Source: Scyliorhinus canicula | Taxonomy: Eukaryota | DNA: 38,810 nucleotides | Direction of reading: 5' to 3' | Assembly (NCBI RefSeq): GCF_902713615.1 | Contig: NW_024055452.1 | Span: forward strand, 1-38,810 | In this document: positions 3,530 through 35,045 of the stretch, one piece after another | Layout of the letters: each line of letters starts with the position of its first letter | Numbering within the stretch: the first letter of the stretch is position 1 | The notes under the pieces: generated by a model | Databases searched by the model: none | What the model was told of the DNA's origin: nothing | What the model saw: only the letters and a program-made list of their open reading frames with translations | Position numbers and translations under genes: made by a program

Positions 3530-3790
3530 TGGGTGACTGTGTAGAATTTGCACTTTCTCCCTGTGTCTGCGTGGGTTCCTTCCGGGTGCTCCAGTTTCCT
3601 CCCACAGTCCAAAAACGTGCAGCCTAGGTGGATTGGCCATTCTAAAAGATTTCCCCTGAGTGTCCAAAGATTAGGTGGGTTTCTGGGGATAGGGTGGAGG
3701 AGTGGTCCTGAGTGGGGTGCCGCATTGGAGGGTCTGTGCAGACTCAATGGGCTGCATGGCTTCGTTCTGCACTTTACGGATTCTATGGAA
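3530..3790 (+). mobile_element. 5'-truncated HE1-like SINE with CR1-type 3' tail
   Basis: SINE core followed by ...ATGGGCTGCATGGCTTCGTTCTGCACTTTACGGATTCTATG tail. Confidence 0.65.
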
Positions 3791-7130: not shown

Positions 7131-7729
7131 GTTTTGGGTCTCCTCGTCTCTCTCCAGGCCGGATGATCAGTTGAAGCCTCATCCACACACACAAGGGTAC
7201 GGTCTTTACACGCTGTGAATAGTGTGATGTTTTTTCAGGCTGTGTAACTGGTTAAAGCTTTTTCCACAGTCAGTTCACTGGAACACTCTCACTGGGGTGT
7301 GTGTTGTGTGGGTCTCGGTGTTTTTCCAGTCACACTGATGTTTGAAATCTTTAGCTGACAGTTCCAGTAAACATTTCACCTTCTTGATTCAAAGGCTGAT
7401 GATATTCAGGTTCTAAGGAATCGAGTGACTATCAGATCGAGACGTGACTTTTGAGATTTCTGTCTGTAATTCCTCCTTGTCTAATATCCTGTAAAAACAA
7501 TTTACAAACTTCATCACTGTCAGTACAGGATAGAAACTCAGAACAGACAATTCTAGTTTCTATGTCACATTTTTTCCTTTCTCTTATTCCGCGAAAGCTG
7601 CAAATCTCCATCCCACACACTCTCCCTCCATTCTCACTCTGCTGTATCTAATATTCACCCTCCCAATTCTCCCGAAGGTGCAGATTAATGTTGATTGACA
7701 GATCCAAACTCTCAGCCTCCCATCCAGGA

Positions 7730-12592: not shown

Positions 12593-12730
12593 CTGTAAAA
12601 GAGAGAGAAAATAATGAAGCAGATGTTTATGATCTGGGACATTGATGTTAGAGTTTTTAATCAATCAAACATTTAGTGTTTTTAAACGCCTTCTGTCAGT
12701 TTGAAGTGTGAGTGGATTGGATCTTCTCAC

Positions 12731-12858
12731 CTTCACCAGAGTGACTGCAGCGCTGTAGGACATGCTCAGGAAGAACAGGGTGATGAATGTGGAAGCGGTT
12801 GTCCAGATGTTCCCGTTATCATCCTCATTTTCTTCAGTCCAGGTGTGGTCTGTGGTAT
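12731..12858 (-). CDS. IGHM: IgM TM1 exon (DTTDHTWTEENEDDNGNIWTTASTFITLFFLSMSYSAAVTLVK)
   Basis: CGTAG| acceptor and AAG|GTGAGA donor; 128 bp plus 1 nt from CH4 gives 43 codons; acidic spacer and CART-type WTTASTF..LF.LS..YS..VTL motif. Not in the ORF track. Confidence 0.93.
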
Positions 12859-13017
12859 CTACGAGGATCGAGCCAAATATAATTAGTTTGTTTATTAATC
12901 CAGGATATGTTTTTTAATATTCTCGTTTCATTTTCTCCCGCTGCTAATTCATTCTTTAATATATTTGTCATTGCATATCTACTGTTGAGTTCATGACACT
13001 CGGAAATCGATCGCTGT

Positions 13018-13636: not shown

Positions 13637-13860
13637 GGGCAGCACGGTGGCCTCGTGGTTAGCACAACCGCCTCACGACGCTGAGGTCCCAGGTTCGATC
13701 CCGGCTCTGGGTCACTGTCCGTGTGGAGTTTGCACATTCTCCCCGTGTCTGCGTGGGTTTCGCCCCCACAACCCAAAAATGTGCAGAGTAGGTGGATTGG
13801 CCATGCTAAATTGCCCCTTAATTGGAAAAAAATAATTGGGTAATCTAAATTTAAAAAAAT
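13637..13860 (+). mobile_element. Young short SINE with 13-bp TSD (ATATAATCCCTAT), nested in the tail of an older SINE
   Basis: TSD at 13624-13636 and 13861-13873; A-box and B-box (GGTTCGATCCC) present. Confidence 0.85.
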
Positions 13861-13873
13861 ATATAATCCCTAT

Positions 13874-14170
13874 TGTGCCGAACGAGGCCATTCGGCCCAT
13901 TGTGTCTGCACCGACCCTCCGAAAGAGCACTCTGCCTGGACGCATGCCCCTGCCCTGTCACCAGAACCCCGTAACCCCACCTAACGTTGTGGGCATTAAG
14001 CGGTAATATAGCCTGGCCAACCCACCGAACCCGCACATCTTTGGACTGTGGGAGGAAACTAGAGCACGCGGAGGAAACAGGAACAGACCTGGCAGAACAT
14101 GGGAACACCACACAGACAATCACCCAAGGCTGGAATTGAACCCGGGATTATGGCGCTGTGCGGCAGTGGT
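13874..14170 (-). mobile_element. Older HE1-like SINE with CR1-type tail
   Basis: GAGGCCATTCGGCCCATTGTGTCTGCACCG tail in reverse; its end continues left of the nested SINE (CATAGAATCATC, about 13606-13620). Confidence 0.7.
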
Positions 14171-14368
14171 GCTATTTATGCGTTGATGTTTGATTATAAC
14201 TATCTATTGATGTGTATTGATGACTCTATGTATATTCATATGTGTTCGTGTTAGCGTGTGTACGAGTCAGCTAATATGTATCTACGTGTGTCCGTTAGTG
14301 TGGATTATTGTCTCTGTTTGAATGGAAATATTTCTGTCATCGTGAAATTCTGCTAATTTACATGTTAT

Positions 14369-17300
14369 CCAGCAGAGGGCAGCAGAGCAGAGCTACTGAT
14401 CAGCTGTTCTGGGGGAATTTGCATACGTGCAGTGTGGTCAGCCTAAGTTGAAGGGGAACCGGCAAAGGAGACCCAAGGAGTTTGAGTGAAGACAAGCATC
14501 CAGCAGAGGGCAGCAGAGCAGAGCTACTGATCAGCTGTTCTGGGGGAATTTGCATACGTGCAGTGTGGTCAGCCTAAGTTGAAGGGGAACCGGCGAAGGA
14601 GACCCAAGGAGTTTGAGTGAAGACAAGCATCCAGCAGAGGGCAGCAGAGCAGAGCTACTGATCAGCTGTTCTGGGGGAATTTGCATACGTGCAGTGCGGT
14701 CAGCCTAAGTTGAAGGGGAACCGGCGAAGGAGACCCAAGGAGTTTGAGTGAAGACAAGCATCCAGCAGAGGGCAGCAGAGCAGAGCTACTGATCAGCTGT
14801 TCTGGGGGAATTTGCATACGTGCAGTGCGGTCAGCCTAAGTTGAAGGGGAACCGGCGAAGGAGACCCAAGGAGTTTGAGTGAAGACAAGCATCCAGCAGA
14901 GGGCAGCAGAGCAGAGCTACTGATCAGCTGTTCTGGGGGAATTTGCATACGTGCAGTGTGGTCAGCCTAAGTTGAAGGGGAACCGGCGAAGGAGACCCAA
15001 GGAGTTTGAGTGAAGACAAGCATCCAGCAGAGGGCAGCAGAGCAGAGCTACTGATCAGCTGTTCTGGGGGAATTTGCATACGTGCAGTGTGGTCAGCCTA
15101 AGTTGAAGGGGAACCGGCGAAGGAGACCCAAGGAGTTTGAGTGAAGACAAGCATCCAGCAGAGGGCAGCAGAGCAGAGCTACTGATCAGCTGTTCTGGGG
15201 GAATTTGCATACGTGCAGTGTGGTCAGCCTAGGTTGAAGGGGAACCGGCGAAGGAGACCCAAGGAGTTTGAGTGAAGACAAGCATCCAGCAGAGGGCAGC
15301 AGAGCAGAGCTACTGATCAGCTGTTCTGGGGGAATTTGCATACGTGCAGTGTGGTCAGCCTAAGTTGAAGGGGAACCAGCGAAGGAGACCCAAGGAGTTT
15401 GAGTGAAGACAAGCATCCAGCAGAGGGCAGCAGAGCAGAGCTACTGATCAGCTGTTCTGGGGGAATTTGCATACGTGCAGTGTGGTCAGCCTAAGTTGAA
15501 GGGGAACCGGCGAAGGAGACCCAAGGAGTTTGAGTGAAGACAAGCATCCAGCAGAGGGCAGCAGAGCAGAGCTACTGATCAGCTGTTCTGGGGGAATTTG
15601 CATACGTGCAGTGTGGTCAGCCTAAGTTGAAGGGGAACCGGCGAAGGAGACCCAAGGTGTTTGAGTGAAGACAAGCATCCAGCAGAGGGCAGCAGAGCAG
15701 AGCTACTGATCAGCTGTTCTGGGGGAATTTGCATACGTGCAGTGGGGTCAGCCTAAGTTGAAGGGGAACCGGCGAAGGAGACCCAAGGAGTTTGAGTGAA
15801 GACAAGCATCCAGCAGAGGGCAGCAGAGCAGAGCTACTGATCAGCTGTTCTGGGGGAATTTGCATACGTGCAGTGCGGTCAGCCTAAGTTGAAGGGGAAC
15901 CGGCGAAGGAGACCCAAGGAGTTTGAGTGAAGACAAGCATCCAGCAGAGGGCAGCAGAGCAGAGCTACTGATCAGCTGTTCTGGGGGAATTTGCATACGT
16001 GCAGTGTGGTCAGCCTAAGTTGAAGGGGAACCGGCGAAGGAGACCCAAGGAGTTTGAGTGAAGACAAGCATCCAACAGAGGGCAGCAGAGCAGAGCTACT
16101 GATCAGCTGTTCTGGGGGAATTTGCATACGTGCAGTGGGGTCAGCCTAAGTTGAAGGGGAACCGGCGAAGGAGACCCAAGGAGTTTGAGTGAAGACAAGC
16201 ATCCAGCAGAGGGCAGCAGAGCAGAGCTACTGATCAGCTGTTCTGGGGGAATTTGCATACGTGCAGTGTGGTCAGCCTACGTTGAAGGGGAACCGGCGAA
16301 GGAGACCCAAGGAGTTTGAGTGAAGACAAGCATCCAGCAGAGGGCAGCAGAGCAGAGCTACTGATCAGCTGTTCTGGGGGAATTTGCATACGTGCAGTGC
16401 GGTCAGCCTAAGTTGAAGGGGAACCGGCGAAGGAGACCCAAGGAGTTTGAGTGAAGACAAGCATCCAGCAGAGGGCAGCAGAGCAGAGCTACTGATCAGC
16501 TGTTCTGGGGGAATTTGCATACGTGCAGTGCGGTCAGCCTAAGTTGAAGGGGAACCGGCGAAGGAGACCCAAGGAGTTTGAGTGAAGACAAGCATCCAGC
16601 AGAGGGCAGCAGAGCAGAGCTACTGATCAGCTGTTCTGGGGGAATTTGCATACGTGCAGTGTGGTCAGCCTAAGTTGAAGGGGAACCGGCGAAGGAGACC
16701 CAAGGAGTTTGAGTGAAGACAAGCATCCAGCAGAGGGCAGCAGAGCAGAGCTACTGATCAGCTGTTCTGGGGGAATTTGCATACGTGCAGTGGGGTCAGC
16801 CTAAGTTGAAGGGGAACCGGCGAAGGAGACCCAAGGAGTTTGAGTGAAGACAAGCATCCAGCAGAGGGCAGCAGAGCAGAGCTACTGATCAGCTGTTCTG
16901 GGGGAATTTGCATACGTGCAGTGCGGTCAGCCTAAGTTGAAGGGGAACCGGCGAAGGAGACCCAAGGAGTTTGAGTGAAGACAAGCATCCAGCAGAGGGC
17001 AGCAGAGCAGAGCTACTGATCAGCTGTTCTGGGGGAATTTGCATACGTGCAGTGGGGTCAGCCTAAGTTGAAGGGGAACCGGCGAAGGAGACCCAAGGAG
17101 TTTGAGTGAAGACAAGCATCCAGCAGAGGGCAGCAGAGCAGAGCTACTCATCAGCTGTTCTGGGGGAATTTGCATACGTGCAGTGGGGTCAGCCTACGTT
17201 GAAGGGGAACCGGCGAAGGAGACCCAAGGAGTTTGAGTGAAGACAAGCATCCAGCAGAGGGCAGCAGAGCAGAGCTACTGATCAGCTGTTCTGGGGGAAT

Positions 17301-20300
17301 TTGCATACGTGCAGTGGGGTCAGCCTAAGTTGAAGGGGAACCGGCGAAGGAGACCCAAGGAGTTTGAGTGAAGACAAGCATCCAGCAGAGGGCAGCAGAG
17401 CAGAGCTACTGATCAGCTGTTCTGGGGGAATTTGCATACGTGCAGTGGGGTCAGCCTAAGTTGAAGGGGAACCGGCGAAGGAGACCCAAGGAGTTTGAGT
17501 GAAGACAAGCATCCAGCAGAGGGCAGCAGAGCAGAGCTACTGATCAGCTGTTCTGGGGGAATTTGCATACGTGCAGTGCGGTCAACCTAAGTTGAAGGGG
17601 AACCGGCGAAGGAGACCCAAGGAGTTTGAGTGAAGACAAGCATCCAGCAGAGGGCAGCAGAGCAGAGCTACTGATCAGCTGTTCTGGGGGAATTTGCATA
17701 CGTGCAGTGTGGTCAGCCTAAGTTGAAGGGGAACCGGCGAAGGAGACCCAAGGAGTTTGAGTGAAGACAAGCATCCAACAGAGGGCAGCAGAGCAGAGCT
17801 ACTGATCAGCTGTTCTGGGGGAATTTGCATACGTGCAGTGGGGTCAGCCTAAGTTGAAGGGGAACCGGCGAAGGAGACCCAAGGAGTTTGAGTGAAGACA
17901 AGCATCCAGCAGAGGGCAGCAGAGCAGAGCTACTGATCAGCTGTTCTGGGGGAATTTGCATACGTGCAGTGTGGTCAGCCTACGTTGAAGGGGAACCGGC
18001 GAAGGAGACCCAAGGAGTTTGAGTGAAGACAAGCATCCAGCAGAGGGCAGCAGAGCAGAGCTACTGATCAGCTGTTCTGGGGGAATTTGCATACGTGCAG
18101 TGCGGTCAGCCTAAGTTGAAGGGGAACCGGCGAAGGAGACCCAAGGAGTTTGAGTGAAGACAAGCATCCAGCAGAGGGCAGCAGAGCAGAGCTACTGATC
18201 AGCTGTTCTGGGGGAATTTGCATACGTGCAGTGCGGTCAGCCTAAGTTGAAGGGGAACCGGCGAAGGAGACCCAAGGAGTTTGAGTGAAGACAAGCATCC
18301 AGCAGAGGGCAGCAGAGCAGAGCTACTGATCAGCTGTTCTGGGGGAATTTGTATACGTGCAGTGTGGTCAGCCTAAGTTGAAGGGGAACCGGCGAAGGAG
18401 ACCCAAGGAGTTTGAGTGAAGACAAGCATCCAGCAGAGGGCAGCAGAGCAGAGCTACTGATCAGCTGTTCTGGGGGAATTTGCATACGTGCAGTGCGGTC
18501 AGCCTAAGTTGAACGGGAACCGGCGAAGGAGACCCAAGGAGTTTGAGTGAAGACAAGCATCCAGCAGAGGGCAGCAGAGCAGAGCTACTGATCAGCTGTT
18601 CTGGGGGAATTTGCATACGTGCAGTGTGGTCAGCCTAAGTTGAAGGGGAACCGGCGAAGGAGACCCAAGGAGTTTGAGTGAAGACAAGCATCCAGCAGAG
18701 GGCAGCAGAGCAGAGCTACTGATCAGCTGTTCTGGGGGAATTTGCATACGTGCAGTGGGGTCAGCCTAAGTTGAAGGGGAACCGGCGAAGGAGACCCAAG
18801 GAGTTTGAGTGAAGACAAGCATCCAGCAGAGGGCAGCAGAGCAGAGCTACTGATCAGCTGTTCTGGGGGAATTTGCATACGTGCAGTGCAGTCAGCCTAA
18901 GTTGAAGGGGAACCGGCGAAGGAGACCCAAGGAGTTTGAGTGAAGACAAGCATCCAGCAGAGGGCAGCAGAGCAGAGCTACTGATCAGCTGTTCTGGGGG
19001 AATTTGCATACGTGCAGTGGGGTCAGCCTAAGTTGAAGGGGAACCGGCGAAGGAGACCCAAGGAGTTTGAGTGAAGACAAGCATCCAGCAGAGGGCAGCA
19101 GAGCAGAGCTACTGATCAGTTGTTCTGGGGGAATTTGCATACGTGCAGTGGGGTCAGCCTACGTTGAAGGGGAACCGGCGAAGGAGACCCAAGGAGTTTG
19201 AGTGAAGACAAGCATCCAGCAGAGGGCAGCAGAGCAGAGCTACTGATCAGCTGTTCTGGGGGAATTTGCATACGTGCAGTGGGGTCAGCCTAAGTTGAAG
19301 GGGAACCGGCGAAGGAGACCCAAGGAGTTTGAGTGAAGACAAGCATCCAGCAGAGGGCAGCAGAGCAGAGCTACTGATCAGCTGTTCTGGGGGAATTTGC
19401 ATACGTGCAGTGGGGTCAGCCTACGTTGAAGGGGAACCGGCGAAGGAGACCCAAGGAGTTTGAGTGAAGACAAGCATCCAGCAGAGGGCAGCAGAGCAGA
19501 GCTACTGATCAGCTGTTCTGGGGGAATTTGCATACGTGCAGTGGGGTCAGCCTACGTTGAAGGGGAACCGGCGAAGGAGACCCAAGGAGTTTGATTGAAG
19601 ACAAGCATCCAGCAGAGGGCAGCAGAGCAGAGCTACTGATCAGCTGTTCTGGGGGAATTTGCATACGTGCAGTGGGGTCAGCCTAAGTTGAAGGGGAACC
19701 GGCGAAGGAGACCCAAGGAGTTTGAGTGAAGACAAGCATCCAGCAGAGGGCAGCAGAGCAGAGCTACTGATCAGCTGTTCTGGGGGAATTTGCATACGTG
19801 CAGTGGGGTCAGCCTAAGTTGAAGGGGAACCGGCGAAGGAGACCCAAGGAGTTTGAGTGAAGACAAGCATCCAGCAGAGGGCAGCAGAGCAGAGCTACTG
19901 ATCAGCTGTTCTGGGGGAATTTGCATACGTGCAGTGGGGTCAGCCTACGTTGAAGGGGAACCGGCGAAGGAGACCCAAGGAGTTTGAGTGAAGACAAGCA
20001 TCCAGCAGAGGGCAGCAGAGCAGAGCTACTGATCAGCTGTTCTGGGGGAATTTGCATACGTGCAGTGGGGTCAGCCTAAGTTGAAGGGGAACCGGCGAAG
20101 GAGACCCAAGGAGTTTGAGTGAAGACAAGCATCCAGCAGAGGGCAGCAGAGCAGAGCTACTGATCAGCTGTTCTGGGGGAATTTGCATACGTGCAGTGGG
20201 GTCAGCCTACGTTGAAGGGGAACCGGCGAAGGAGACCCAAGGAGTTTGAGTGAAGACAAGCATCCAGCAGAGGGCAGCAGAGCAGAGCTACTGATCAGCT

Positions 20301-22052
20301 GTTCTGGGGGAATTTGCATACGTGCAGTGGGGTCAGCCTACGTTGAAGGGGAACCGGCGAAGGAGACCCAAGGAGTTTGATTGAAGACAAGCATCCAGCA
20401 GAGGGCAGCAGAGCAGAGCTACTGATCAGCTGTTCTGGGGGAATTTGCATACGTGCAGTGGGGTCAGCCTAAGTTGAAGGGGAACCGGCGAAGGAGACCC
20501 AAGGAGTTTGAGTGAAGACAAGCATCCAGCAGAGGGCAGCAGAGCAGAGCTACTGATCAGCTGTTCTGGGGGAATTTGCATACGTGCAGTGGGGTCAGCC
20601 TAAGTTGAAGGGGAACCGGCGAAGGAGACCCAAGGAGTTTGAGTGAAGACAAGCATCCAGCAGAGGGCAGCAGAGCAGAGCTACTGATCAGCTGTTCTGG
20701 GGGAATTTGCATACGTGCAGTGGGGTCAGCCTACGTTGAAGGGGAACCGGCGAAGGAGACCCAAGGAGTTTGAGTGAAGACAAGCATCCAGCAGAGGGCA
20801 GCAGAGCAGAGCTACTGATCAGCTGTTCTGGGGGAATTTGCATACGTGCAGTGGGGTCAGCCTAAGTTGAAGGGGAACCGGCGAAGGAGACCCAAGGAGT
20901 TTGAGTGAAGACAAGCATCCAGCAGAGGGCAGCAGAGCAGAGCTACTGATCAGCTGTTCTGGGGGAATTTGCATACGTGCAGTGGGGTCAGCCTACGTTG
21001 AAGGGGAACCGGCGAAGGAGACCCAAGGAGTTTGAGTGAAGACAAGCATCCAGCAGAGGGCAGCAGAGCAGAGCTACTGATCAGCTGTTCTGGGGGAATT
21101 TGCATACGTGCAGTGGGGTCAGCCTACGTTGAAGGGGAACCGGCGAAGGAGACCCAAGGAGTTTGAGTGAAGACAAGCATCCAGCAGAGGGCAGCAGAGC
21201 AGAGCTACTGATCAGCTGTTCTGGGGGAATTTGCATACGTGCAGTGGGGTCAGCCTACGTTGAAGGGGAACCGGCGAAGGAGACCCAAGGAGTTTGAGTG
21301 AAGACAAGCATCCAGCAGAGGGCAGCAGAGCAGAGCTACTGATCAGCTGTTCTGGGGGAATTTGCATACGTGCAGTGGGGTCAGCCTACGTTGAAGGGGA
21401 ACCGGCGAAGGAGACCCAAGGAGTTTGAGTGAAGACAAGCATCCAGCAGAGGGCAGCAGAGCAGAGCTACTGATCAGCTGTTCTGGGGGAATTTGCATAC
21501 GTGCAGTGGGGTCAGCCTACGTTGAAGGGGAACCGGCGAAGGAGACCCAAGGAGTTTGAGTGAAGACAAGCATCCAGCAGAGGGCAGCAGAGCAGAGCTA
21601 CTGATCAGCTGTTCTGGGGGAATTTGCATACGTGCAGTGGGGTCAGCCTACGTTGAAGGGGAACCGGCGAAGGAGACCCAAGGAGTTTGAGTGAAGACAA
21701 GCATCCAGCAGAGGGCAGCAGAGCAGAGCTACTGATCAGCTGTTCTGGGGGAATTTGCATACGTGCAGTGGGGTCAGCCTACGTTGAAGGGGAACCGGCG
21801 AAGGAGACCCAAGGAGTTTGTGTGAAGACAAGCATCCAGCAGAGGGCAGCAGAGCAGAGCTACTGATCAGCTGTTCTGGGGGAATTTGCATACGTGCAGT
21901 GGGGTCAGCCTACGTTGAAGGGGAACCGGCGAAGGAGACCCAAGGAGTTTGAGTGAAGACAAGCATCCAGCAGAGGGCAGCAGAGCAGAGCTACTGATCA
22001 GCTGTTCTGGGGGAATTTACATACGTGCAGTGCGGTCAGCCTAAGTTGAAGG
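14369..22052 (+). repeat. 131-bp tandem array, 58 full units plus one 86-bp partial unit, forming the 5' end of the CR1 insertion
   Basis: Unit CCAGCAGAGGGCAGCAGAGCAGAGCTACTGATCAGCTGTTCTGGGGGAATTTGCATACGTGCAGTG(T/C/G)GGTCAGCCTA(A/C)GTTGAAGGGGAACCGGCGAAGGAGACCCAAGGAGTTTGAGTGAAGACAAGCAT; first and last starts are 7598 = 58 x 131 apart, so no net indel. Confidence 0.97.
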
Positions 22053-22305
22053 TGGTTTGTGGAGGGGCTGTTGGCAAGTGACAGTTAAACCCGAAACACT
22101 TCGTGAGTGTTTCCCACCCTACCTCCTCCTCTAACCAACCCCCCCCCCCACCCCACGGTGGTTGGGAAGCGGGAGCAGGGGCCTGTCGTGAAGGTGAGTG
22201 AGTGCCTTTAAATTTGCTTAACTTTCAGCGGGAGCAGGGTTTGAGGTAATATCAGGAAAGCTCTTCCTTTCTTTTTCTTTTTCTTGTTTTTATAATCTAG
22301 AGGTG

Positions 22306-23244
22306 ATGTCAGGGAAGGCAGTACAATGCTCCTCCTGCAGAATGTTTGAGGTGAGGGATGCCGTCAGTGTCCCTGCTGATTTCATCTGTGGGAAGTGCAC
22401 CCAACTCCAGCTCCTCAAAAACCGTGTTAGGGACCTGGAGCTTGAGCTGGATGAACTTCGGATCATTCGGGAGGCAGAGGGGGTCATAGATAGGAGCTTC
22501 AGGGAAGTAGTTACACCAAAGACTGGAGATAGATGGGTAACTGTAAGAGGGACTGGGAAGAAGCAGTCAGTGCAGGGATCCCCTGCGGTCGTTCCCCTGA
22601 GTAACAAGTATACCGTTTTGGATACTTGTGGGGGGGGGGGGACTTACCAGGGGTAAGCCATGGGGTACGGGCCTCTGGCACGGAGTCTGTCCCTGTTGCT
22701 CAGAAGGGAAGGGGGGAAAGGAGTAGAACATTAATAATTGGGGACTCAATAGTCAGGGGCACAGATAGGAGATTTTGTGGGAGCGAGAGAGACTCACGTT
22801 TGGTATGTTGCCTCTCAGGTGCAAGGGTAAGTGATGTCTCGGATCGTGTTTTCCGGGTCCTTAAGGGGGAGGGGGAGCAGCCCCAAGTCGTAGTCCACAT
22901 TGGCACTAACGACATAGGTAGGAAAGGGGACAAGGATGTCAGGCAGGCCTTTAGGGAGCTAGGATGGAAGCTCAGAGCGAGAACAAACAGTGTTGTTATC
23001 TCTGGGTTGTTGCCCGTGCCACGTGATGGTGAGATGAGGAATAGGGAGAGAGAGCAATTAAACACGTGGCTACAGGGATGGTGCAGGCGGGAGGGATTCA
23101 GATTTCTGGATAACTGGGGCTCTTTCTGGGGAAGGTGGGACCTCTATAGACAGGATGGTCTACATCTGAACCTGAGGGGCACCAATATCCTGGGGGGGGG
23201 GGGGGGGGGAGATTTGTTAGTGCTCTTTGGGGGGTTTAAACTAA
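22306..23244 (+). CDS. CR1 ORF1p (CxxC..CxxC zinc finger, leucine zipper, SGNH esterase), broken by two G-run frameshifts in this sequence
   Basis: QCSSC..ICGKC..LKNRVRDLELEL; GDS (IIGDSIV), GxND (HIGTND) and DxxH (DGLH); G12 at 22630-22641 and G18 at 23192-23209; expected end ..RFVSALWGGLN* at 23244. Confidence 0.8.
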
Positions 23245-23300
23245 TTCAGCAGGGGCATGGGAACCTGGATTGTAGTTTTGGGGTACGGGAGATTGAGAGT

Positions 23301-26129
23301 ATGGAGGTCAGGAGCACAGATTTGACTTCGCAGGAGGGTGCCAGTGTTCAGGTAGGTGGTTTGAAGTGTGTCTACTTCAATGCCAGGAGTATACGAAATA
23401 AGGTAGGGGAACTGGCAGCATGGGTTGGTACCTGGGACTTCGACGTCGTGGCCATTTCAGAGACATGGATAGAGCAGGGACAGGAATGGTTGTTGCAGGT
23501 TCCGGGGTTTAGGTGTTTTAGTAAGCTCAGAGAAGGGGGCAAAAGAGGGGGAAGTGTGGCGCTGCTAGTCAAGGACAGTATTACGGTGGCGGAAAGGATG
23601 CTAGATGGGGACTCTTCTTCTGAGGTAGTATGGGCTGAGCTTAGAAACAGGAAAGGAGAGGTCACCCTGTTGGGAGTTTTCTATAGGCCACCTAATAGTT
23701 CTAGGGATGTAGAGGAAAGGATGGCGAAGATGATTCTGGAAAAGAGCGAAAGTAACAGGGTAGTTGTTATGGGAGACTTTAACTTTCCAAATATTGACTG
23801 GAAAAGATATAGTTCGAGTACATTAGATGGGTCGTTCTTTGTACAATGTGTGCAGGAGGGTTTCCTGACACAATATGTTGACAGGCCAACAAGAGGCGAG
23901 GCCACATTGGATTTGGTTTTGGGTAATGAACCACGCCAGGTGTTAGATCTGGAGGTAGGTGAGCACTTTGGAAACAGTGACCACAATTCGGTGACCTTTA
24001 CGTTAGTGATGGAAAGGGATAAGTATACCCCGCAGGGCAAGAGTTATAGCTGGGGGAAGGGCAATTATGATGCCATTAGACATGACTTAGGATGTGTTGG
24101 TTGGAGAAGTAGGCTGCAAGGGTTGGGCACACTGGATATGTGGAGCTTGTTCAAGGAACAGCTATTGCATGTTCGTGATAAGTACGTACCAGTCAGGCAG
24201 GGAGGAAGGGGTCGAGCGAGGGAACCGTGGTTTACCAAAGAAGTGGAATCTCTTGTTAAGAGGAAGAAGGAGGCCTCTGTGAAGATGAGGCATGAAGTTT
24301 CAGTTGGGGCGCTTGATAGTTACAAGGAAGCGAGTAAGGATCTAAAGAGAGAGCTGAGACGAGCAAGGAGGAGCCATGAGAAGTCTTTGGCAGGTAGGAT
24401 CAAGGAAAACCCAAAAGCTTTCTATAGGTATGTCAGGAATAAAAGAATGACTAGGGTAAGAGTAGGGCCAGTCAAGGACAGTGGTGGGAAGTTGTGTGTG
24501 GAGGCTGAGGAGATAAGCGAGATACTAAATGAATACTTTTTGTCAGTATTCACTCAAGAAAAAGATAATATTGTGGAGGAGAATGCTGAGACCCAGGCTA
24601 TTAGAATAGATGGCATTGAGGTGCGTAGGGAAGAAGTGTTGGCAATTCTGGACAAGGTGAAAATAGATAAGTCCCCGGGGCCGGATGGGATTTATCCTAG
24701 GATTCTCTGGGAAGCCAGGGAAGAGATTGCTGAGCCTTTGGCTTTGATTTTTAGGTCATCATTGGCTACAGGAATAGTGCCAGAGGACTGGAGGATAGCA
24801 AATGTGGTCCCTTTGTTCAAGAAGGGGAGTAGAGATAACCCCGGTAACTATAGGCCGGTGAGCCTAACGTCTGTGGTGGGTAAGGTCTTGGAGAGGATTA
24901 TAAAAGATACGATTTATAATCATCTAGATAGGAATAATATGATTAGGGATAGTCAGCATGGTTTTGTGAAGGGTAAGTCATGCCTCACAAACCTTATCGA
25001 GTTCTTTGAGAAGGTGACTGATCAGGTAGACGAGGGTAGAGCAGTTGATGTGGTGTATATGGATTTCAGTAAAGCGTTTGATAAGGTTCCCCATGGTCGG
25101 CTATTGCAGAAAATACGGAGGCTGGGGATTGAGGGTGATTTAGAGATGTGGATCAGAAATTGGCTAGTTGAAAGAAGACAGAGAGTGGTAGTTGATGGGA
25201 AATGTTCAGAATGGAGTTCAGTTACGAGTGGCGTACCACAAGGATCTGTTCTGGGGCCGTTGCTGTTTGTCATTTTTATAAATGACCTAGAGGAGGGCGC
25301 AGAAGGATGGGTGAGTAAATTTGCAGACGACACTAAAGTTGGTGGAGTTGTAGACAGTGCGGAAGGATGTGGCAGGTTACAGAGGGACATAGATAAGCTG
25401 CAGAGCTGGGCTGAGAGGTGGCAAATGGAGTTTAATGTGGATAAGTGTGAGGTGATTCACTTTGGAAAGAATAACAGGAATGCGGAATATTTGGCTAATG
25501 GTAAAATTCTTGGTAGTGTGGATGAGCAGAGGGATCTCGGTGTCCATGTACATAGATCCCTGAAAGTTGCCACCCAGGTTGATAGGGTAGTGAAGAAGGC
25601 CTATGGTGTGTTGGCCTTTATTGGTAGAGGGATTGAGTTCCGGAGCCATGAGGTCATGTTGCAGTTGTACAAAACTCTAGTACGGCCGCATTTGGAGTAT
25701 TGCGTACAGTTCTGGTCGCCTCATTATAGGAAGGACGTGGAAGCTTTAGAACGGGTGCAGAGGAGATTTACCAGGATGTTGCCTGGTATGGAGGGAAAAT
25801 CTTATGAGGAAAGGCTGATGGACTTGAGGTTGTTTTCGTTAGAGAGAAGAAGGTTAAGAGGTGACTTAATAGAGGCATACAAAATGATCAGAGGGTCAGA
25901 TAGGGTGGACAGCGAGAGCCTTCTCCCGCGGATGGAGGTGGCTAGCACGAGGGGACATAGCCTTAAATTGAGGGGTAATAGATATAGGACAGAGGTCAGA
26001 GGTGGGTTTTTTACGCAAAGAGTGGTGAGGCCGTGGAATGCCCTAACTGCAACAGTAGTGAACTCGCCAACATTGAGGGCATTAAAAAATTTATTGGATA
26101 AGCATATGGATGATAAGGGCATAGTGTAG
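23301..26129 (+). CDS. CR1 ORF2p (APE endonuclease plus reverse transcriptase), about 942 aa from the ATG at 23301, uninterrupted
   Basis: APE motifs NARS, SETW, GVFYRPP, MGDFN, SDH; RT motifs PGPDG, YRPVSLTS, QHGF, DFSKAFD, GVPQGSVLGP, FADD. The true start codon is inferred. Confidence 0.93.
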   Translation: MEVRSTDLTSQEGASVQVGGLKCVYFNARSIRNKVGELAAWVGTWDFDVVAISETWIEQGQEWLLQVPGFRCFSKLREGGKRGGSVALLVKDSITVAERMLDGDSSSEVVWAELRNRKGEVTLLGVFYRPPNSSRDVEERMAKMILEKSESNRVVVMGDFNFPNIDWKRYSSSTLDGSFFVQCVQEGFLTQYVDRPTRGEATLDLVLGNEPRQVLDLEVGEHFGNSDHNSVTFTLVMERDKYTPQGKSYSWGKGNYDAIRHDLGCVGWRSRLQGLGTLDMWSLFKEQLLHVRDKYVPVRQGGRGRAREPWFTKEVESLVKRKKEASVKMRHEVSVGALDSYKEASKDLKRELRRARRSHEKSLAGRIKENPKAFYRYVRNKRMTRVRVGPVKDSGGKLCVEAEEISEILNEYFLSVFTQEKDNIVEENAETQAIRIDGIEVRREEVLAILDKVKIDKSPGPDGIYPRILWEAREEIAEPLALIFRSSLATGIVPEDWRIANVVPLFKKGSRDNPGNYRPVSLTSVVGKVLERIIKDTIYNHLDRNNMIRDSQHGFVKGKSCLTNLIEFFEKVTDQVDEGRAVDVVYMDFSKAFDKVPHGRLLQKIRRLGIEGDLEMWIRNWLVERRQRVVVDGKCSEWSSVTSGVPQGSVLGPLLFVIFINDLEEGAEGWVSKFADDTKVGGVVDSAEGCGRLQRDIDKLQSWAERWQMEFNVDKCEVIHFGKNNRNAEYLANGKILGSVDEQRDLGVHVHRSLKVATQVDRVVKKAYGVLAFIGRGIEFRSHEVMLQLYKTLVRPHLEYCVQFWSPHYRKDVEALERVQRRFTRMLPGMEGKSYEERLMDLRLFSLERRRLRGDLIEAYKMIRGSDRVDSESLLPRMEVASTRGHSLKLRGNRYRTEVRGGFFTQRVVRPWNALTATVVNSPTLRALKNLLDKHMDDKGIV

Positions 26130-26228
26130 GTTAGATGGCCTTTAGTTTTTTTTCCATGTCGGTGCAACATTGAGGGCCGAAGGGCCTGTACTGCGCTGTA
26201 TCGTTCTATGTTCTATGTTCTATGTTAT

Positions 26229-26590
26229 TGGTTACATTTGTGTTTCATATTCTTCAGTCAGTCTGCTTGTCTGGTTGTATATGTCTGTATACATGCATGT
26301 ACCCACTTGTGTGTGTGGAATTGTGTTTGTATGTGTGGATGCGCACGTGAGTCTGTGTGTTTCTAAACATGTGCTTTTTGTGTTTATGTGCATGCTTGTG
26401 AATTTTTGTGCACATTTGCGTGTGTTTTTGTGTCAAAATATGTGTGGTCCGTTGTGCCTGGGTGTATGTTTGTGCATGTGTTTCTATGTGTGTGTCCATG
26501 TGTGTGTTTGTGTCTACGTGCGAGCGTGTGTGTGTTTCTGGGTCTGTGTGCATGTGTAGTGTCTGTGTCTGTTTATCTGTCTGTGTATTT
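26229..26590. repeat. TG-rich low-complexity intron sequence (counterparts at about 13220-13600 and 14175-14365)
   Basis: Degenerate (TG)n and TGTA/TGTC runs on both sides of the LINE insertion. Confidence 0.7.
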
Positions 26591-26734
26591 GTATCAGCTG
26601 CCTGTAGCTTTGCCAGTTGTGGGTATTATTGATACCGATGTAGAATTGGTGGAGGTGGAGATACAGAGAGTTCACTCATCACCTTCCTCCTCTTGTGGTT
26701 GGGAAAGTGGAGGTAAAATGGGTTAGTATTGCCC

Positions 26735-27345
26735 CTTTGCTCTCTTTGTTGGGGAAGTGGGGAGGCAGTGCATTAAATAATGTCCTTCCACTCATTGTTG
26801 GAAGCGGGTGTCCAGTGGATTAACTCAGCCCCCCACTGTCTCTTTGTTGGGGAAGTGGGGGGGTACAGTGTGTTAAGTAATGCCCCAACCCCTCTCTTTG
26901 TTGGGGACGTGGGGAGACAATGGATTAACTAATGCCCCTCTCTTTGTTGGTGAAGTGGGGCTACAGTGGATTAACTAAATCCCCTCCCACTCTTTCTGTT
27001 GGTGAAGTGGGGGTACAGTAGATTAACTAAAGCCCCTCCCACTCTCTCTGTTGGGGAAGTGGGGGTACAGTGAATTAACTAAAGACCCTCCCCCTCCCTC
27101 TATTGGGGAAGTGGGGGTACAGTGGATTAACTAATGCCCCTCCCCTCTCTGTTGGGGAAGTGGGGGTACAGTGGATTAACTAATGCCCCTCCTCCTCTCT
27201 CTGTTGGGGAAGTGGGGATACAGTGGTTAACTAATGCCCTTCCCCATCTCTCTGTGGGGGAGGTGGGTGGGTGGGGAGACAGTGGAATAACTAATACCCC
27301 TCCCACTCTCTCTGTTGGGGAGGTAGGGGTACAGTAGATTAACAA
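26735..27345. repeat. About 49-bp G-rich minisatellite, about 12 diverged copies
   Basis: Unit approximately TGTTGGGGAAGTGGGGGTACAGTGGATTAACTAATGCCCCTCCCCTCTC; AGTGGATTAA recurs at 27121 and 27170. Confidence 0.88.
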
Positions 27346-27801: not shown

Positions 27802-28193
27802 TCATTGACATGAATTAACGGTGTCCATCAGAGCGAGGGAAATGTTCACAAAACTGGGTTTACCGCTGGATTTATCAACCGTTCTGTTGATGATCTTCAA
27901 GGGGATGGCTTCATGTCCCACCACACAGGAGTAAGAAGCGCCGCTAGCCCACTCCTCCGCTGCAATGGATAACAGGCTGTACATGAAGAAGGAGCTATTG
28001 CCGGTCTTCGCCATCACCTCGGTGTTCTTGTAGTTCCCGGGATTCACCGGCTTGTCATTGACGGTCCACTTGACGAAGATCTCTCGGGGGGAGAAACCTC
28101 TCACTAAGCAGCTGAGGGAGACGAATCTCTGAGCGGAGACGTCTTCCGCCGAGGGCAGGAGGACAGAGACGGACGGTTCCCGCGGATTGGGAT
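27802..28193 (-). CDS. IGHM: IgM CH4 exon plus secretory tailpiece; internal donor at 27864/27863 for the membrane form
   Basis: TCTGCAG| acceptor; [43 protein letters not shown]...[25 protein letters not shown]|GTAAAC; tail [20 protein letters not shown] with N-glycan site and penultimate Cys. Confidence 0.96.
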
Positions 28194-28489
28194 CTGCAGA
28201 AAATGTACAATAAATGTCAATAAAATGGGGAATTCCGGAGACAATGGAACCGCGGGTTAGATGTGAGAGAAATGTGTTTTGTGTTGGATTTTAAAGGTTT
28301 CCATTTTCCACTTTGGGATCTGTCCGGTTTCCCAGCTCGGAGCAGAGGTGGACACAATCCTTTTCCCTGAGAATTTACGGATATTGGATTCGAAAGTTTC
28401 AGAAAATGTACAGCAGGGAAACAGGCCATTCGGCCCAACTCTTCTGTGCTGGTGTATAAACTCCACATCAAACTCCCCCTACCTCAAGA

Positions 28490-29680
28490 GGATTGGAAAA
28501 CTGCCAATGTAACACCCTTATTCAAAAGGGAGGGAGACAAAAACAGGTAACTATAGGCCAGGAACCTCAGTAGCTGAGCATTTAGACATACAGAGTATAA
28601 TCAAGCAGGTTCTGCACGGCTTCGTGAAGGGTAAATCATGCCTGACAAATTTATTGCAATTGTTTGAGGTGATAAGGAGAAGGCGAGAGAGAGGGGGACC
28701 AGTAGATGTAATATACATGAATTTCAAAACTGTGTTTAATAAATGAATGCACTATTCCCATGGCTGCAGATGACAAAAATAGAAAGGCAAGTGGTGAGGT
28801 TACAGAAAATCTAGAGAGGGACAGAGACAGCTTCAGTCACTGAGTTAAAACTTGGCAGATGGGACATAATGTTGGAAAATGTGAGGTTAGACACTTTGGG
28901 AGGAGGAGGAACATAACGGAATATTATTTAGATGGAGAAAGACTGCAGAAAGCTGAAGTAACGGGGGAATTGGGGGTCCTCGTGCAGAAACCACAAAAAA
29001 GCAAATTCTGCAGGTAATATGGAGACAAATTGAATGTTGACATTTATTTCAAAGGGAATAGAATATAAACATGGGGAAGTCTGGCTAAAACTATACAAGG
29101 CATTAGTTAGTCTACACCTGATACACTTTGAATAGTTTTGTTGCCCTTATCTGAGGAAGACAGATTGGTTTTGAGGGCAGTCCAGAGAAGGATCACGAGG
29201 TTGATCCCGAGTATGGAGGGATTTTCTTATGGGGAGAGGTTAAGTATTTTGTGTTGTACATATTGGAGTTTAGAAGAATGAAGGCGGCCTAATCGAGACA
29301 TGAAATATTCTCCGGGAGCTTCTTAGGATAGACGCTAACAGATTGTTTTCCCTTGTAGGAGCGTCTAGGAGCAGCGTGCATGATCGCAAAGTGAGGGTTC
29401 GCCCATTTCAGACCGAGATGAGAAGGAATTTCCTCTCTCAGAGGGTAGTGAAGCTGTGGAATTATTTAACCTGTAGATTCTGGGTCGGTCGGTATTTTCA
29501 AGGTTGAGAGGGAAACATTTTCAATTAGTAAAAGCGTCAAGAGATATGGGGATAAGGTGGGAAAGAGGAGTTGAAGATTATCACAGCAGATCAGTCATGA
29601 CCTCACGGAAGGCTGGGCCTCTGTTGATGGGCCCAATGACCTTCATCTGCTCCTAAATCTTGTGGTCTATGGTCTCGCTC
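28490..29680 (+). mobile_element. Old, internally deleted CR1 ORF2/3' UTR fragment in the CH3-CH4 intron
   Basis: PQEDWK.ANVTPLFK...GNYRP, HGFVKGKSCLTNL and other ORF2 remnants with many stops; ends in a CTGCTCCTAAATCTTGTGGTCTATGG tail. Confidence 0.8.
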
Positions 29681-29992: not shown

Positions 29993-30064
29993 AAATACTG
30001 ACCGCTGCACTGACACCAGAAATAGACACAATGACTCACTTATTGCTTCAGTCTCACCGCTCAC

Positions 30065-30373
30065 CTATTTTTTTGTGTATTGAAATTCTTAAAGGAGTTG
30101 GCAGGTCCTGATGGCTCGCCACACAGTCAAACACAGCCCCACTCAGCCAGGCTTGTGTCGAGATGTTTAATTTGCTGACCACGCTCTCAGTATCTGCCCC
30201 AGGCTGGTCGGCAATCTGTGATTTCAGCGGCTTCTTCGCTTCACTCCAGGACACGTTGACTCCATAAGGAGCATTCGAAATGATGCAGGTTAAGGTTACA
30301 GTTACCTCCAGTAAGACCTGTTCTATTGGTGGTGGCAGTATTGTTCCTGAGGCTACAGTGCAAACGGAAGGAT
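30065..30373 (-). CDS. IGHM: IgM CH3 exon
   Basis: TTCACAG| acceptor and G|GTGAGC donor; 309 bp, phase 1; [43 protein letters not shown]...[22 protein letters not shown]. Confidence 0.95.
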
Positions 30374-30995
30374 CTGTGAATGAAAAAAGTGGAAATCAAC
30401 CCAAGTTTCATCTTCAGAATCAGGACAGCAGGATTCAGCCTTCACTCACTCAATGGGAATGAATCAACTTCGAGACTTCTAATGATCGCCATTAATCTTC
30501 TATACACGTTTGGTCAGTGTAAACTCTTCTCATTATGAAATACAGTCAGCCCCAATGCCATTCTAACGAATCAGTATTGCAGCATTCCCAATACAAATAC
30601 TCAAGTGCTGATCTCAGGAACGAAGTACTGAGGGCTTATTTATAAATAGATTGGATTGAACTTTCCAACACTTTCGTCCCGGAGCTGTTATCAGTAAAGT
30701 GTTTCAGACACCCACTGACTCTTAAATATACGCAGCGGTCTCAGGATAAAGCTGATATCAAGGCCACCTCACTCACTAAATGACTTCAAATTAGAGCGAA
30801 ACATGAATTTATATACTGATCAAATCCTGAATGGTGAGCAATCCTAATGCAGCTTTTCCATCAGAATGAAACACAAACTACATGGCAGTAAATTAGAAGT
30901 TATTCTGTGCTTTGTACTAACTTCAGTAAATTCCTGATTTGGATTAACATCAGAATGCAGGATGATTCATTCTTTCCTCTGTTTGTGTCTCTTAC

Positions 30996-31304
30996 CAGAC
31001 GCGGTGATGTTGTAACTTTGGGTGACCTCTTGATGAGTGACCTGGCAGGTATAGACCGCTCTGCTGAACCATTCCCCAGCGGAGAGTGTCAGCCGACTGC
31101 TCGCTGAGAAGTTCCCGTTCACTTCACAGGCGGGAGAGGTGACAATTCCTGACCCCATGGGTTGTCCATTCTTCAGCCACTTCACCGTGATTGAATTTGG
31201 CTGGAAATCGTTAATTGAACAGACGATGGTTGCAAATTTCTGTCTTGTGATTTCTTCACTGGAACTCACGGTGAGGAGAACATTTGGAGCATAAATTCTG
31301 GGAC
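30996..31304 (-). CDS. IGHM: IgM CH2 exon
   Basis: TTCTTGAAG| acceptor and G|GTAAGA donor; 309 bp; [47 protein letters not shown]...[19 protein letters not shown]. Confidence 0.95.
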
Positions 31305-31509
31305 CTTCAAGAAACACAATTAGATATTTCTTGCAGAAGAAATTGATGAAAAAAATGAGTTCATATGCTTTAAAACATGTTTGTGGTCAATAGACACAAA
31401 GCTTGATTTTCCAGGGAAGAAATATGCAGAGTATTAAAATTAGTTATATCCAAGACCCTATACAAGATAATCATAGGTTTCTGATTCTCACAGATTCCAC
31501 AACACTTAC

Positions 31510-31809
31510 ATGTCATTCCAATGCTCTTGGCTGAGCCGCTGTGTCGAACCGCACAGCTGATTTTGCTGCATGCCCCCTCTGACTCGGTGATGGTTAACTG
31601 GCTGCTCAGGGTGTAGGTTCCCTTCTTGTTTCTCACTGACGGGTATTTCTTAACTCCAGTGGCGATCAGCTGCCCATCTTTCTTCCAGGTAAGGCTGGTG
31701 ATTTCTGGGGAGTAGTCCATCGCCAAACAGCCGAAGGTCACGGAGCCGTCGGTGTTGTGTTGCTGGCAGGAGGAAACCAGGCTGTAGAGAGTGGGCGGAG
31801 ACGGTGTCG
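31510..31809 (-). CDS. IGHM: IgM CH1 exon
   Basis: TTCTCTCCCAG| acceptor and T|GTAAGT donor; 300 bp; [44 protein letters not shown]...[17 protein letters not shown]. Confidence 0.95.
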
Positions 31810-32164
31810 CTGGGAGAGAATGGCCCATTCAACAGGTTAGACTCTGGGATTGTATTTATTCAGTAACCAAACATTTCAAAATTTGACGAGAACTATGTGT
31901 TTATTCCAACATTTTCCTAACAAATGTTACATCCACATTTCAGCTTCTATTAGTTCTACCATTTGAGAACCAACACCTGTTTGCCCCTCATTAGAAACTC
32001 ACATCTTTCTCCGTCTCTATCACATAAAAACAACATGTTGATGTAATCTGAATGATGTAATTTGCATTGGATTGAAAGCGAAAGCGAAGAGCGGATGATT
32101 TTCCCCATTATGTCAGCCATCATGGAAAACAAAATGTAATGTCCCATAGACCCGGAGTCTGCTC

Positions 32165-34964: not shown

Positions 34965-35045
34965 TAACCTCAGCCGGTGCAGCAATTGAACCCGCGCTGC
35001 TGGGATTGATCTTCATCACGAACCAGCCGCCCAGCTGACTGTGCC

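Follow-up and report, generated by a model that had tools for sequence, protein, structure and literature searches.

In the window, that is, the whole 38,810-nucleotide stretch of shark DNA that was analysed, a single LINE insertion carries at its 5' end a tandem array of 58.66 units that underwent DNA-level reshaping at its locus after the insertion had taken place. The majority of these units originated, or underwent turnover, at this site, and net growth of the array in place is likely. As judged from its sequence, the element belongs to a young and abundant LINE family in the CR1/L2 group, and the normal 5' end of this family is made up of N full 131-bp monomers, an 86-bp partial monomer and a 253-bp unique UTR. 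Textbooks treat the monomeric 5' end as a peculiarity of rodent L1.

Structure of the element and its insertion site

The element and its boundaries comprise the following features.

14362-14368, + strand: left boundary repeat ATGTTAT, 7 bp, read directly; present as a single copy at 60 empty paralogous sites
14369-22052, + strand: 5' monomer array, 58 units of 131 bp (A86+S45) plus a terminal 86-bp partial unit; from TRF and register reading
22053-22305, + strand: unique 5' UTR ("tether"), 253 bp, from the last partial monomer to ORF1; the same junction is found genome-wide
22306-22656, + strand: N-terminal part of ORF1, 116 aa, with a Cys-rich zinc-finger-like motif and a coiled-coil-like stretch
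22737-23180, + strand: ORF1 esterase (GDSL/SGNH) domain; Pfam Lipase_GDSL_2 E=5e-14, PDB 4c1b E=1.6e-24
23373-23993, + strand: ORF2 apurinic-type endonuclease (APE) domain; Pfam Exo_endo_phos E=1.4e-18, Exo_endo_phos_2 E=4.8e-11
24825-25493, + strand: ORF2 reverse transcriptase (RT) domain; Pfam RVT_1 E=1.7e-35, PDB LINE-1 ORF2p E about 1e-33
26130-26221, + strand: 3' UTR, closing with a (GTTCTAT)3 microsatellite tail from 26203, without poly(A)
26222-26228, + strand: right boundary repeat ATGTTAT, the initial 5 bases of which likewise fit the phase of the tail repeat

The array is recovered by TRF as a single tandem repeat (14367-22052; period 131, 58.7 copies, 99% matches, zero indels), and a strict 131-bp register counted from 14369 places the final 86-bp partial unit at 21967-22052. 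This partial unit abuts unique sequence directly, and the ATG of ORF1 lies at 22306. The initial annotation had described both an unbroken passage from the partial unit into UTR and ORF1 and an overall order (A86-S45)58-A86-UTR-ORF1-ORF2; direct reading confirms the former, and the register, TRF, the ORFs and the domains uphold the latter. The array, with units about 99% alike and the LINE still attached, is about 7.7 kb long. Its + strand is rich in purines, and each unit contains, as read from the sequence, an octamer ATTTGCAT and an E-box CAGCTG, situated about 75-100 bp upstream of the start of the following unit.

In the window copy, a private 2-bp insertion (22638-22639) ends ORF1 after 116 aa, whereas the modal ORF1 in other copies has 308 aa. 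The esterase domain lies in another frame and is joined to ORF2 via private indels (a 10-bp insertion at 23192-23201 and a 1-bp deletion at about 23231); the ORF2 stop codon is at 26127-26129. With ORF1 frameshifted and ORF1 and ORF2 fused by private indels, the window copy is therefore coding-dead. A (GTTCTAT)n tail closes 19 of 19 full copies (the window copy and 18 others) and is reminiscent of the avian CR1 octamer repeat. The combination of an N-terminal APE and an RT in ORF2, a Type IV ORF1, a microsatellite 3' end without poly(A), and target site duplications (TSDs) that are short or absent is as expected of the CR1 clade of the Jockey superfamily. An esterase-bearing Type IV ORF1 is found in both the CR1 and the L2 lineages, including L2 subgroup 9 (PMC4120745), so that the element may belong to either. 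Of the earlier designation as a "CR1 LINE," the identification of a LINE with an esterase ORF1, APE and RT stands, but the preference for CR1 over L2 is not supported, as the type of ORF1 fails to discriminate between them (PMC4120745).

The limits of the insertion are defined by paralogous loci from which it is missing. The predicted empty site (TTACATGTTAT joined to TGGTTACATTTG) has 60 matches at ≤2 mismatches, with 0 for the reversed control, and in flank searches the left and right matches overlap by exactly 7 bp in at least 25 paralogues. Since each of the 60 sites, all in paralogous IgM clusters, has a single ATGTTAT, one insertion accounts for the whole of 14369-26228 (11,860 bp). The initial annotation had claimed one 11.9-kb insertion of array plus LINE between ATGTTAT repeats and had proposed a search for its empty site; the sites found, with their junction at a single ATGTTAT, agree with this claim. 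The length of the duplication itself is ambiguous, from 0 to 7 bp, because the element normally begins with AT and the right-hand ATGTT is in phase with the tail. Other copies usually start at AT/CCAGCAG, and the closing AT of the left ATGTTAT may instead belong to the element as its opening dinucleotide. Thus, the true target duplication may have any length from 0 to 7 bp, and the insertion is clean regardless. A census of 18 other full copies gave just 0-7 bp ambiguous repeats, so that TSDs alone are no proof that the arrays transpose.

A monomeric 5' end throughout the family

A tabulation of monomer and UTR across the genome had been suggested. It shows that the array is no peculiarity of the window copy, as arrays of the N.66 pattern are the family norm. 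The monomer-to-UTR junction occurs at 3,598 places genome-wide (≤2 mismatches) and unit-to-unit junctions number 7,274, giving a mean of about 2.0 units. Each of 39 other full-length copies that were sampled (39/39; 96-98% identity overall, 95-98% across UTR 22053-22305) carries monomers in the N.66 pattern. Unit number is variable among independent insertions, ranging from 1.66 to 31.58 in these 39 copies and reaching 58.66 in the window copy, and in at least 19 further loci the UTR is directly preceded by 24 to 57.66 or more units. Chromosome-scale contigs carry arrays of 48 to 57.66 or more units; the long arrays on C12, C23, C11 and C3 are known from coordinates and identity alone. Two diverged arrays, C3:185803366-185807939 and C12:84529079-84534176 (with a twin), stop at unit phase 119, and no UTR was detected beside them.

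The point at which the elements begin is also shared. Among determinable 5' ends, 37 of 38 fall within about 25 nt of a unit boundary, and most lie exactly at AT/CCAGCAG, adjoining unrelated flanks. The 5' end of the window array is in this same canonical phase.

Turnover and probable growth of the window array

The array has private unit variants, namely 67G, 67T and 78C. Units combining 67G and 78C give 16 exact matches in a search of the 4.2-Gb assembly, all of them in the window contig, and 67G alone is found in the window array plus only 2 units elsewhere in the assembly. The variants are graded along the array, with the ancestral 67C retained in the terminal partial unit. Larger blocks have been duplicated as well: a 6-unit repeat pattern extends across units 36-53 and a 13-unit duplication relates units about 13-19 to units about 26-32, both marked by 118T, 4A and a T-C haplotype. 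Unit-specific changes number 12 where 53.7 would be expected from the private divergence of the body (29/4148; P about 7e-12), a roughly 4-fold deficit. Private variants, nested duplications and the deficit of unit-specific changes together demonstrate turnover in place. That the number of units does change once an element has inserted is independently proven by three segmental-duplicate copies on C18, which share the same flank (98-99.9% identical) and have 4.66, 7.66 and 7.66 units.

The reshaping probably involved blocks of 1, 6 and 13 units and came about by unequal exchange between sister chromatids or homologues, or by replication slippage. The array was most likely enlarged, about 30-fold, from a much shorter one, a direction favored because the family mean is about 2 units. 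We infer that the array is a by-product of tandem-promoter instability, not an adaptation of the dead element. The initial annotation had proposed expansion by unequal exchange after insertion from an A-S-A progenitor; the turnover in place is borne out by the private variants, the nested duplications and the deficit, but the A-S-A starting size is not, and net growth is only the likelier outcome.

A competing account, which we consider unlikely, is that the RNA of a source element with a long array already contained about 59 units, that the 12-kb insertion was copied whole, and that homogenisation followed without net growth. Homogenising an already long inserted array would yield equal private variants and an equal deficit of changes, the canonical phase of the 5' end is as expected of such a copy, and the at least 19 other loci with long arrays on the LINE 5' UTR offer conceivable parallels. 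Also in favor of this account is a copy (L045) with 31.58 units, in which 7 unit-specific changes are seen against 7.6 predicted by the age of the insertion. The age of this array thus equals that of its insertion, which shows that RNA can deliver long arrays too and contradicts the earlier premise, under which reverse transcription of so long an element was improbable. Against such an origin for the window array stand the 67G/78C units, which are common to no other locus in the assembly, the nested local duplications with the 4-fold deficit, and the young-subfamily mean of about 2 units. In addition, the assembly contains no near-identical sibling or master of the window LINE, the best body matches being 98-99%, although a source element could be missing from this one assembly. 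Position-specific markers common to the arrays of one subfamily, sought as signs of nested inheritance, yielded nothing decisive.

Other explanations carry much less weight. That the unit count is an assembly artefact, with too many or too few units assembled into a small unplaced contig of a multi-copy region, gains some plausibility from the window being the whole of a 38.8-kb unplaced contig from a family of at least 61 near-identical clusters, and from the form in which the DNA runs were examined, as Logan contigs of 87-193 nt, shorter than the array. Yet the perfect 131-bp register without indels across 59 units, the ordered, non-random variants, and the arrays of similar length on chromosome-scale contigs leave it a slender chance. 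Multiplication during integration, by slippage or template switching of the reverse transcriptase between monomers or by out-of-register priming of the second strand, would retain the canonical 5' phase, and the same mechanisms have been proposed for the regain of monomers in mouse L1 (bioRxiv 10.1101/2022.08.06.500894). One RNA cannot, however, give three alleles at position 67 and two at position 78, frequent in graded blocks and at high frequency here while absent genome-wide, and the 6- and 13-unit duplications with their markers need mutation followed by DNA-level duplication; this very improbable route was rejected on the graded multi-allele blocks and the marked duplications. Least probable by far is an independent satellite beside which the LINE landed, or the reverse. 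Adjacency and the two diverged arrays that end at phase 119 without a detectable UTR are compatible with it, but it is refuted by empty sites that lack both array and LINE and by an identical A86-to-UTR junction repeated about 3,600 times, with monomers in every full-length copy sampled. Growth and turnover at the locus thus remain the preferred reading of the window array.

Putative promoter function and host context

Promoter activity and a start site within the monomers are inferred here solely from the anatomy of the element. The nearly constant 5' start base across independent insertions suggests a preferred start at the monomer boundary, and the shared start phase would then be the mark of such a transcription start. 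Each monomer may act as a promoter module, in which the octamer and E-box are positioned upstream of the start of the next unit. RNA reads over 21836-26500, which come from 3'-biased oligo-dT libraries and give a family-level signal, show no clear cluster of monomer starts. These reads occur on both strands with a 3' bias, and the private letters of the window copy are absent from them.

A 5- to 10-fold RNA strand bias is limited to 22148-22459, a pattern whose meaning would depend on the strandedness of the libraries.

Cartilaginous fishes typically have IgM genes in multiple clusters, and in one of these the CH4-TM1 intron harbors the element in antisense orientation. The insertion triples the length of this intron and adds 58 octamer motifs. 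It is a possibility that 58 antisense octamer/E-box units alter the expression of this IgM cluster or its secreted/membrane splicing.

Comparison with known systems

In its coding capacity, the element resembles vertebrate CR1 subgroup 7 and L2 subgroup 9, which have a Type IV ORF1 (zinc finger/leucine zipper plus esterase) and an ORF2 with APE and RT (PMC4120745, PMC3905857), as well as short or ambiguous TSDs and a microsatellite 3' end. The structure matched by its esterase domain, PDB 4c1b, is that of the ORF1 esterase of a zebrafish element with a Type IV ORF1 (PMC3905857). In the limited literature searched, no tandem 5' monomer array was described for CR1/L2-group elements, which is not proof of absence. 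The tandem A-modules of Dictyostelium TRE5-A were considered as a parallel and dropped, as the paper on that element does not support it.

Another point of comparison is provided by satellites derived from transposable elements. As in the chicken CR1-derived HinfI/centromeric repeats and pea PisTR-A (from the Ogre 3' UTR), a non-coding part has been amplified to a homogeneous array at the DNA level (PMC9659126, PMC6947457). The tabulated LINE-derived satellites come from ORF2 or 3' regions, and among the cases tabulated in these reviews none is assigned to a 5' UTR; the array here, in contrast, comes from the 5' UTR, is still attached, and measures only 7.7 kb. It has the long, homogeneous, head-to-tail organization of a satellite, with 59 units 99% alike and nested multi-unit duplications, and represents a satellite precursor state at most. 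The proposal of a LINE-promoter-to-satellite transition therefore holds insofar as a homogeneous array has been reshaped by duplication, but this array is still a LINE 5' end and has not become a free satellite; it may represent a first step from a putative promoter module towards satellite-like DNA.

The closest parallel in design is found in the mouse and rat LINE-1 types A, Tf and Gf, in which a unique tether of about 250 bp separates the 5' tandem monomers from ORF1 (PMC5381506). There too, monomer number varies by copy and monomers are homogeneous within subfamilies, and the question of how monomers are regained is shared (PMC5381506; bioRxiv 10.1101/2022.08.06.500894). Monomers tend to be lost at each L1 retrotransposition, and their regain has been attributed variously to unequal crossing-over, replication slippage and integration events (bioRxiv 10.1101/2022.08.06.500894). 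Differences are also considerable. The shark element belongs to the CR1/L2 group, with an esterase ORF1 and a microsatellite tail in place of poly(A); its unit is 131 bp rather than about 200 bp; its 5' ends share a single, fixed position within the monomer, where those of rodents are scattered; and its arrays reach 58 or more units, with a promoter role that is putative. The family thus presents a rodent-L1-like design in an unrelated LINE group, with thousands of young copies, a fixed start phase, and from 1 to 58 or more units.

Within this comparison, the window copy supports the "regain on extant copies" route, as a case, datable from the empty paralogous sites and the dead element, of DNA-level duplication alone rebuilding a tandem 5' region and probably lengthening it. 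More broadly, and only tentatively, a monomeric LINE promoter may have been invented independently outside L1, with two routes coexisting, long arrays borne by RNA and growth at the DNA level as in the window copy, the C18 duplicates and the arrays of at least 57 units. If so, the family would offer a natural system for the monomer-regain question raised by rodent L1 and a seed-bed of new satellites.

Anatomy of the element

The tandem array in the Scyliorhinus canicula window is real, and the central points of the initial annotation hold: the array belongs to a LINE, its boundaries are clean, and DNA-level duplication took place after insertion. That reading needs correction, as monomer arrays are the normal 5' end of this family, in which long ones are recurrent, and insertion can itself bring long arrays.

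Tandem Repeats Finder returns a single array at 14367-22052 (period 131, 58.7 copies, 99% matches, 0 indels). In strict register from 14369 it consists of 58 full units, each of 86 bp (A86) plus 45 bp (S45), and an 86-bp partial unit (21967-22052); past base 86 this final unit departs from the repeat into 253 bp of unique sequence, the UTR or "tether", which ends at an ATG at 22306. A frame change after the 116-aa N-terminal part leads into a 1167-aa frame with esterase, endonuclease, and reverse transcriptase (RT) domains. The structure originally proposed, (A86-S45)58-A86-UTR-ORF1-ORF2, is correct. The 3' end of the LINE is (GTTCTAT)3, without poly(A), and the ATGTTAT claimed for both ends can be read at each of them.

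Features of the LINE and its IgM host unit in the window
14362-14368 and 26222-26228: ATGTTAT boundary repeat
22306 (start): ORF1 N-terminus, Cys-rich/coiled-coil, 116 aa
1167-aa frame: GDSL esterase, E=5e-14 (PDB 4c1b LINE ORF1 esterase, E=1.6e-24)
1167-aa frame: APE endonuclease, E=1.4e-18
1167-aa frame: RT, E=1.7e-35
UTR: private 2-bp deletion
22638-22639: private 2-bp insertion, terminating ORF1 at 116 aa
23192-23201: private 10-bp insertion
about 23231: private 1-bp deletion
12668-12913, minus strand: TM1 exon, IgM heavy chain (…TTASTFITLFFLSMSYSAAVTLVKV)
27805-28290, minus strand: CH4 exon
within 30057-31828, minus strand: CH3, CH2, and CH1 exons
31373-31828, minus strand: CH1 exon

This copy is dead. 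Relative to other copies it carries four private indels, the last two of which join the esterase frame to ORF2, and 29 private substitutions in 4,148 bp (0.70%); family-wide reads carry the other letter at its private sites, and the closest genome matches to its body, the part outside the array, are just 98-99% identical.

A single insertion into an IgM cluster

The window is an entire 38.8-kb unplaced contig of the 4.22-Gb assembly. The sequences to the left (13700-14368) and right (26201-26800) of the LINE both have matches in dozens of paralogous units, located on other unplaced contigs; in at least 25 paralogues the two matches share exactly 7 bp where the left one ends and the right one starts (on contig C108, for example, left 20075-20581 and right 20575-21037). 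The predicted empty site joining at ATGTTAT, AATTTACATGTTAT|TGGTTACATTTGTG, was found at 60 places with ≤2 mismatches, among them the nearest paralogue, C54, and at 0 places with the reversed control. Thus 14369-26228 (11,860 bp) occurs a single time and is missing from 60 or more sister sites; it is one insertion with clean boundaries. Most other copies also have AT, the last two bases of the left repeat, ahead of CCAGCAG, and the ATGTT of the right repeat keeps the phase of the tail repeat; the true target-site duplication is therefore 0-7 bp, a normal length for LINEs of this type.

The host units proved to be IgM clusters, and the LINE sits in antisense orientation within the intron between CH4 and TM1, where it accounts for 11.86 kb of about 14.9 kb; in the 60 empty paralogues this intron would measure about 3 kb.

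The contig also holds a second LINE from a different family, whose frames for APE and RT lie at 32259-34868 (plus strand), and an RT fragment at 28513-28743 (plus strand), both between or beside the IgM constant exons. At 6356-7188 lies a coding-like repeat with 84-bp/252-bp periodicity, which matches that of C2H2 zinc fingers in tandem. Upstream of CH1, in the sense of the minus-strand IgM gene, are a 29-bp minisatellite (16 copies, 35031-35506) and a G-rich 40-bp repeat (59 copies, 36455-38810) that reaches the contig end.

Monomers as a family trait

When two units and the UTR were used as the query, 40 of 1,519 candidates were scored; among these are 39 other full-length copies, 96-98% identical, and once oriented all 39 run from full units through an 86-bp partial unit into the same UTR.

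Units per copy among the 40 candidates scored of 1,519 (.66 denotes the final 86-bp partial unit)
1.66: 6 copies
2.66: 7 copies
3.05 to 3.66: 7 copies
4.66: 5 copies
5.66: 2 copies
6.66: 3 copies
about 7.6: 4 copies
9.66: 1 copy
12.66: 1 copy
13 or more: 1 copy
18.66: 1 copy (L042)
31.58: 1 copy (L045)

The monomer array is the normal 5' end of this LINE family. Across the genome there are 3,598 A86-to-UTR junctions and 7,274 junctions between units (≤2 mismatches; controls 0), which corresponds to about 2.0 full units for each 5'-complete copy. That the array belongs to the LINE, as first claimed, follows from this family-wide junction and from the joint absence of both from the empty sites. 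In 37 of 38 determinable copies the 5' end falls within about 25 nt of a unit boundary, mostly exactly at AT|CCAGCAG, beside flanks that are unique and unrelated to one another; the remaining one is truncated at unit position 81. The family is young, as mean body identity among 18 full copies is 98.7% and the modal lengths of ORF1 (308 aa) and ORF2 (about 843 aa) are both intact in 4 of the 18. Some reads (run X6, at 21962) have a variant spacer ahead of the unit start, …GAGTTCGACGGAGGGTG versus …GAGTTTGAGTGAAGACAAGCAT, which indicates that the genome contains a second subtype of monomer.

Searches with the array alone, or with array, UTR, and ORF1, found at least 19 further loci with at least 24 units at 91-97% identity, continuing through the junction into ORF1. 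The window array is therefore among the largest without being unique.

Examples of long arrays elsewhere in the assembly
C23:21674715-21681219: 49.66 units
C11: about 48 units
C12:84020482-84028016: at least 57.66 units, with a twin exactly 3,977,437 bp away

This C12 twin (80043045-80050579) and a second C12 pair (80552722-80556739 and 84530159-84534176) have, within each pair, the same length and score, and the offset is exactly the same in both; this reflects either recent segmental duplication of a large region (>0.5 Mb) or an erroneous duplication in the assembly. Two further arrays, C3:185803366-185807939 (about 35 units) and C12:84529079-84534176 (about 39), at 91-93% identity, stop at phase 119 rather than 86 and match without the UTR. 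They could belong to an older subfamily that has a different tether, be rearranged copies, or be free arrays.

Turnover and the origin of array length

Marker mutations reveal block duplications in the window array. Position 67, in the family form a C inside a CpG, reads TTCCTTTTTTGCTGTCCTGCGGGGCTGTCCTCTGCGGG...G along the array, with C retained in the last partial unit, and position 78 alternates A/C in the 3' third. The exact 28-mer with 67G and 78C has 16 matches in 4.2 Gb, 16/16 in the window contig; 67G alone is confined to this array and two C7 units, and 67T outside the window is just scattered CpG decay. Units 40 and 46 share 118T within a repeated six-unit haplotype pattern (units 36-53), and 4A at units 14 and 27 with a T-C haplotype at units 15 and 28 marks a 13-unit duplication. 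Among 17 mutational events, 12 unit-specific changes are seen versus 53.7 expected (P about 7e-12) from the body's private rate if all units had been present since insertion. Private variants, the graded 67/78 pattern, block duplications, and this deficit prove turnover: the array was rebuilt at its locus after insertion. Change in unit number after insertion is also seen directly in three copies within about 190 kb of C18 (82356370-82542029), L006, L015, and L047, with 4.66, 7.66, and 7.66 units; their common flank, 98-99.9% identical, makes them one insertion copied by segmental duplication.

Of the post-insertion expansion first envisaged, the DNA-level duplication thus stands, but a short starting array is not proven by the turnover data; net growth from a much shorter array is probable. 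The supporting argument that 12 kb of reverse transcription is improbable is unsafe, as L045, with 31.58 units, has 7 unit-specific changes versus 7.6 expected, so that its array dates back to the insertion itself and long arrays can arrive with the RNA or at integration. The same copy lends weight to inheritance of a long array that was later homogenised, which is nevertheless unlikely for the window array; in L042 (18.66 units), 3 changes are seen versus 10.3 expected (P=0.008). An assembly error in the unit count and growth of the array at integration are both very improbable. Net growth in place from a much shorter array is the favored reading.

Transcription and a proposed mechanism

Each unit contains an E-box, CAGCTG, at positions 33-38 and an octamer, ATTTGCAT, at 48-55 (exceptions: ATTTACAT in the last partial unit and ATTTGTAT in unit 31), which places about 57 perfect octamers antisense within an IgM gene; both motifs are family-wide and not peculiar to this locus. 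The fixed phase of 5' ends at independent insertions would be expected from a preferred start at the monomer boundary. Because E-box and octamer lie about 75-100 bp upstream of where the following unit begins, each unit could promote initiation at the one downstream of it, by analogy with mouse L1. The plus strand of the array is 64% purines and contains CAG repeats, and such a tandem array would be prone to out-of-register exchange and slippage. In active copies this instability would restock promoter units; in a dead copy array size may merely drift, in the window to 59 units.

In raw RNA runs (3'-biased oligo-dT libraries), neither a start cluster in the monomers nor reads with this copy's private letters were seen. 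Two oligo-dT runs show a 3- to 10-fold strand bias over 22148-22459 (UTR and ORF1 start) and about equal reads on the two strands in the rest of the body; the bias may reflect true LINE-promoter transcripts over a read-through background.

Comparison with known systems

By descent, the element is in the CR1/L2 group with Type IV ORF1, an ORF1 type found in CR1 subgroup 7 and L2 subgroup 9 alike (PMC4120745); CR1 is a likely but provisional assignment. Two reviews of tandem repeats derived from transposable elements list cases in which the source was ORF2 or a 3' region of a LINE, chicken CR1 among them, and assign none of their tabulated repeats to a LINE 5' UTR (PMC9659126, PMC6947457). In the limited literature searched, no CR1/L2 element with 5' monomers is described. 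Monomer regain in L1 is still debated among unequal crossing-over, replication errors, and integration-time events (bioRxiv 10.1101/2022.08.06.500894). The nearest functional analogue is found in mouse and rat L1, whose 5' UTR is built of monomers plus a tether (PMC5381506).
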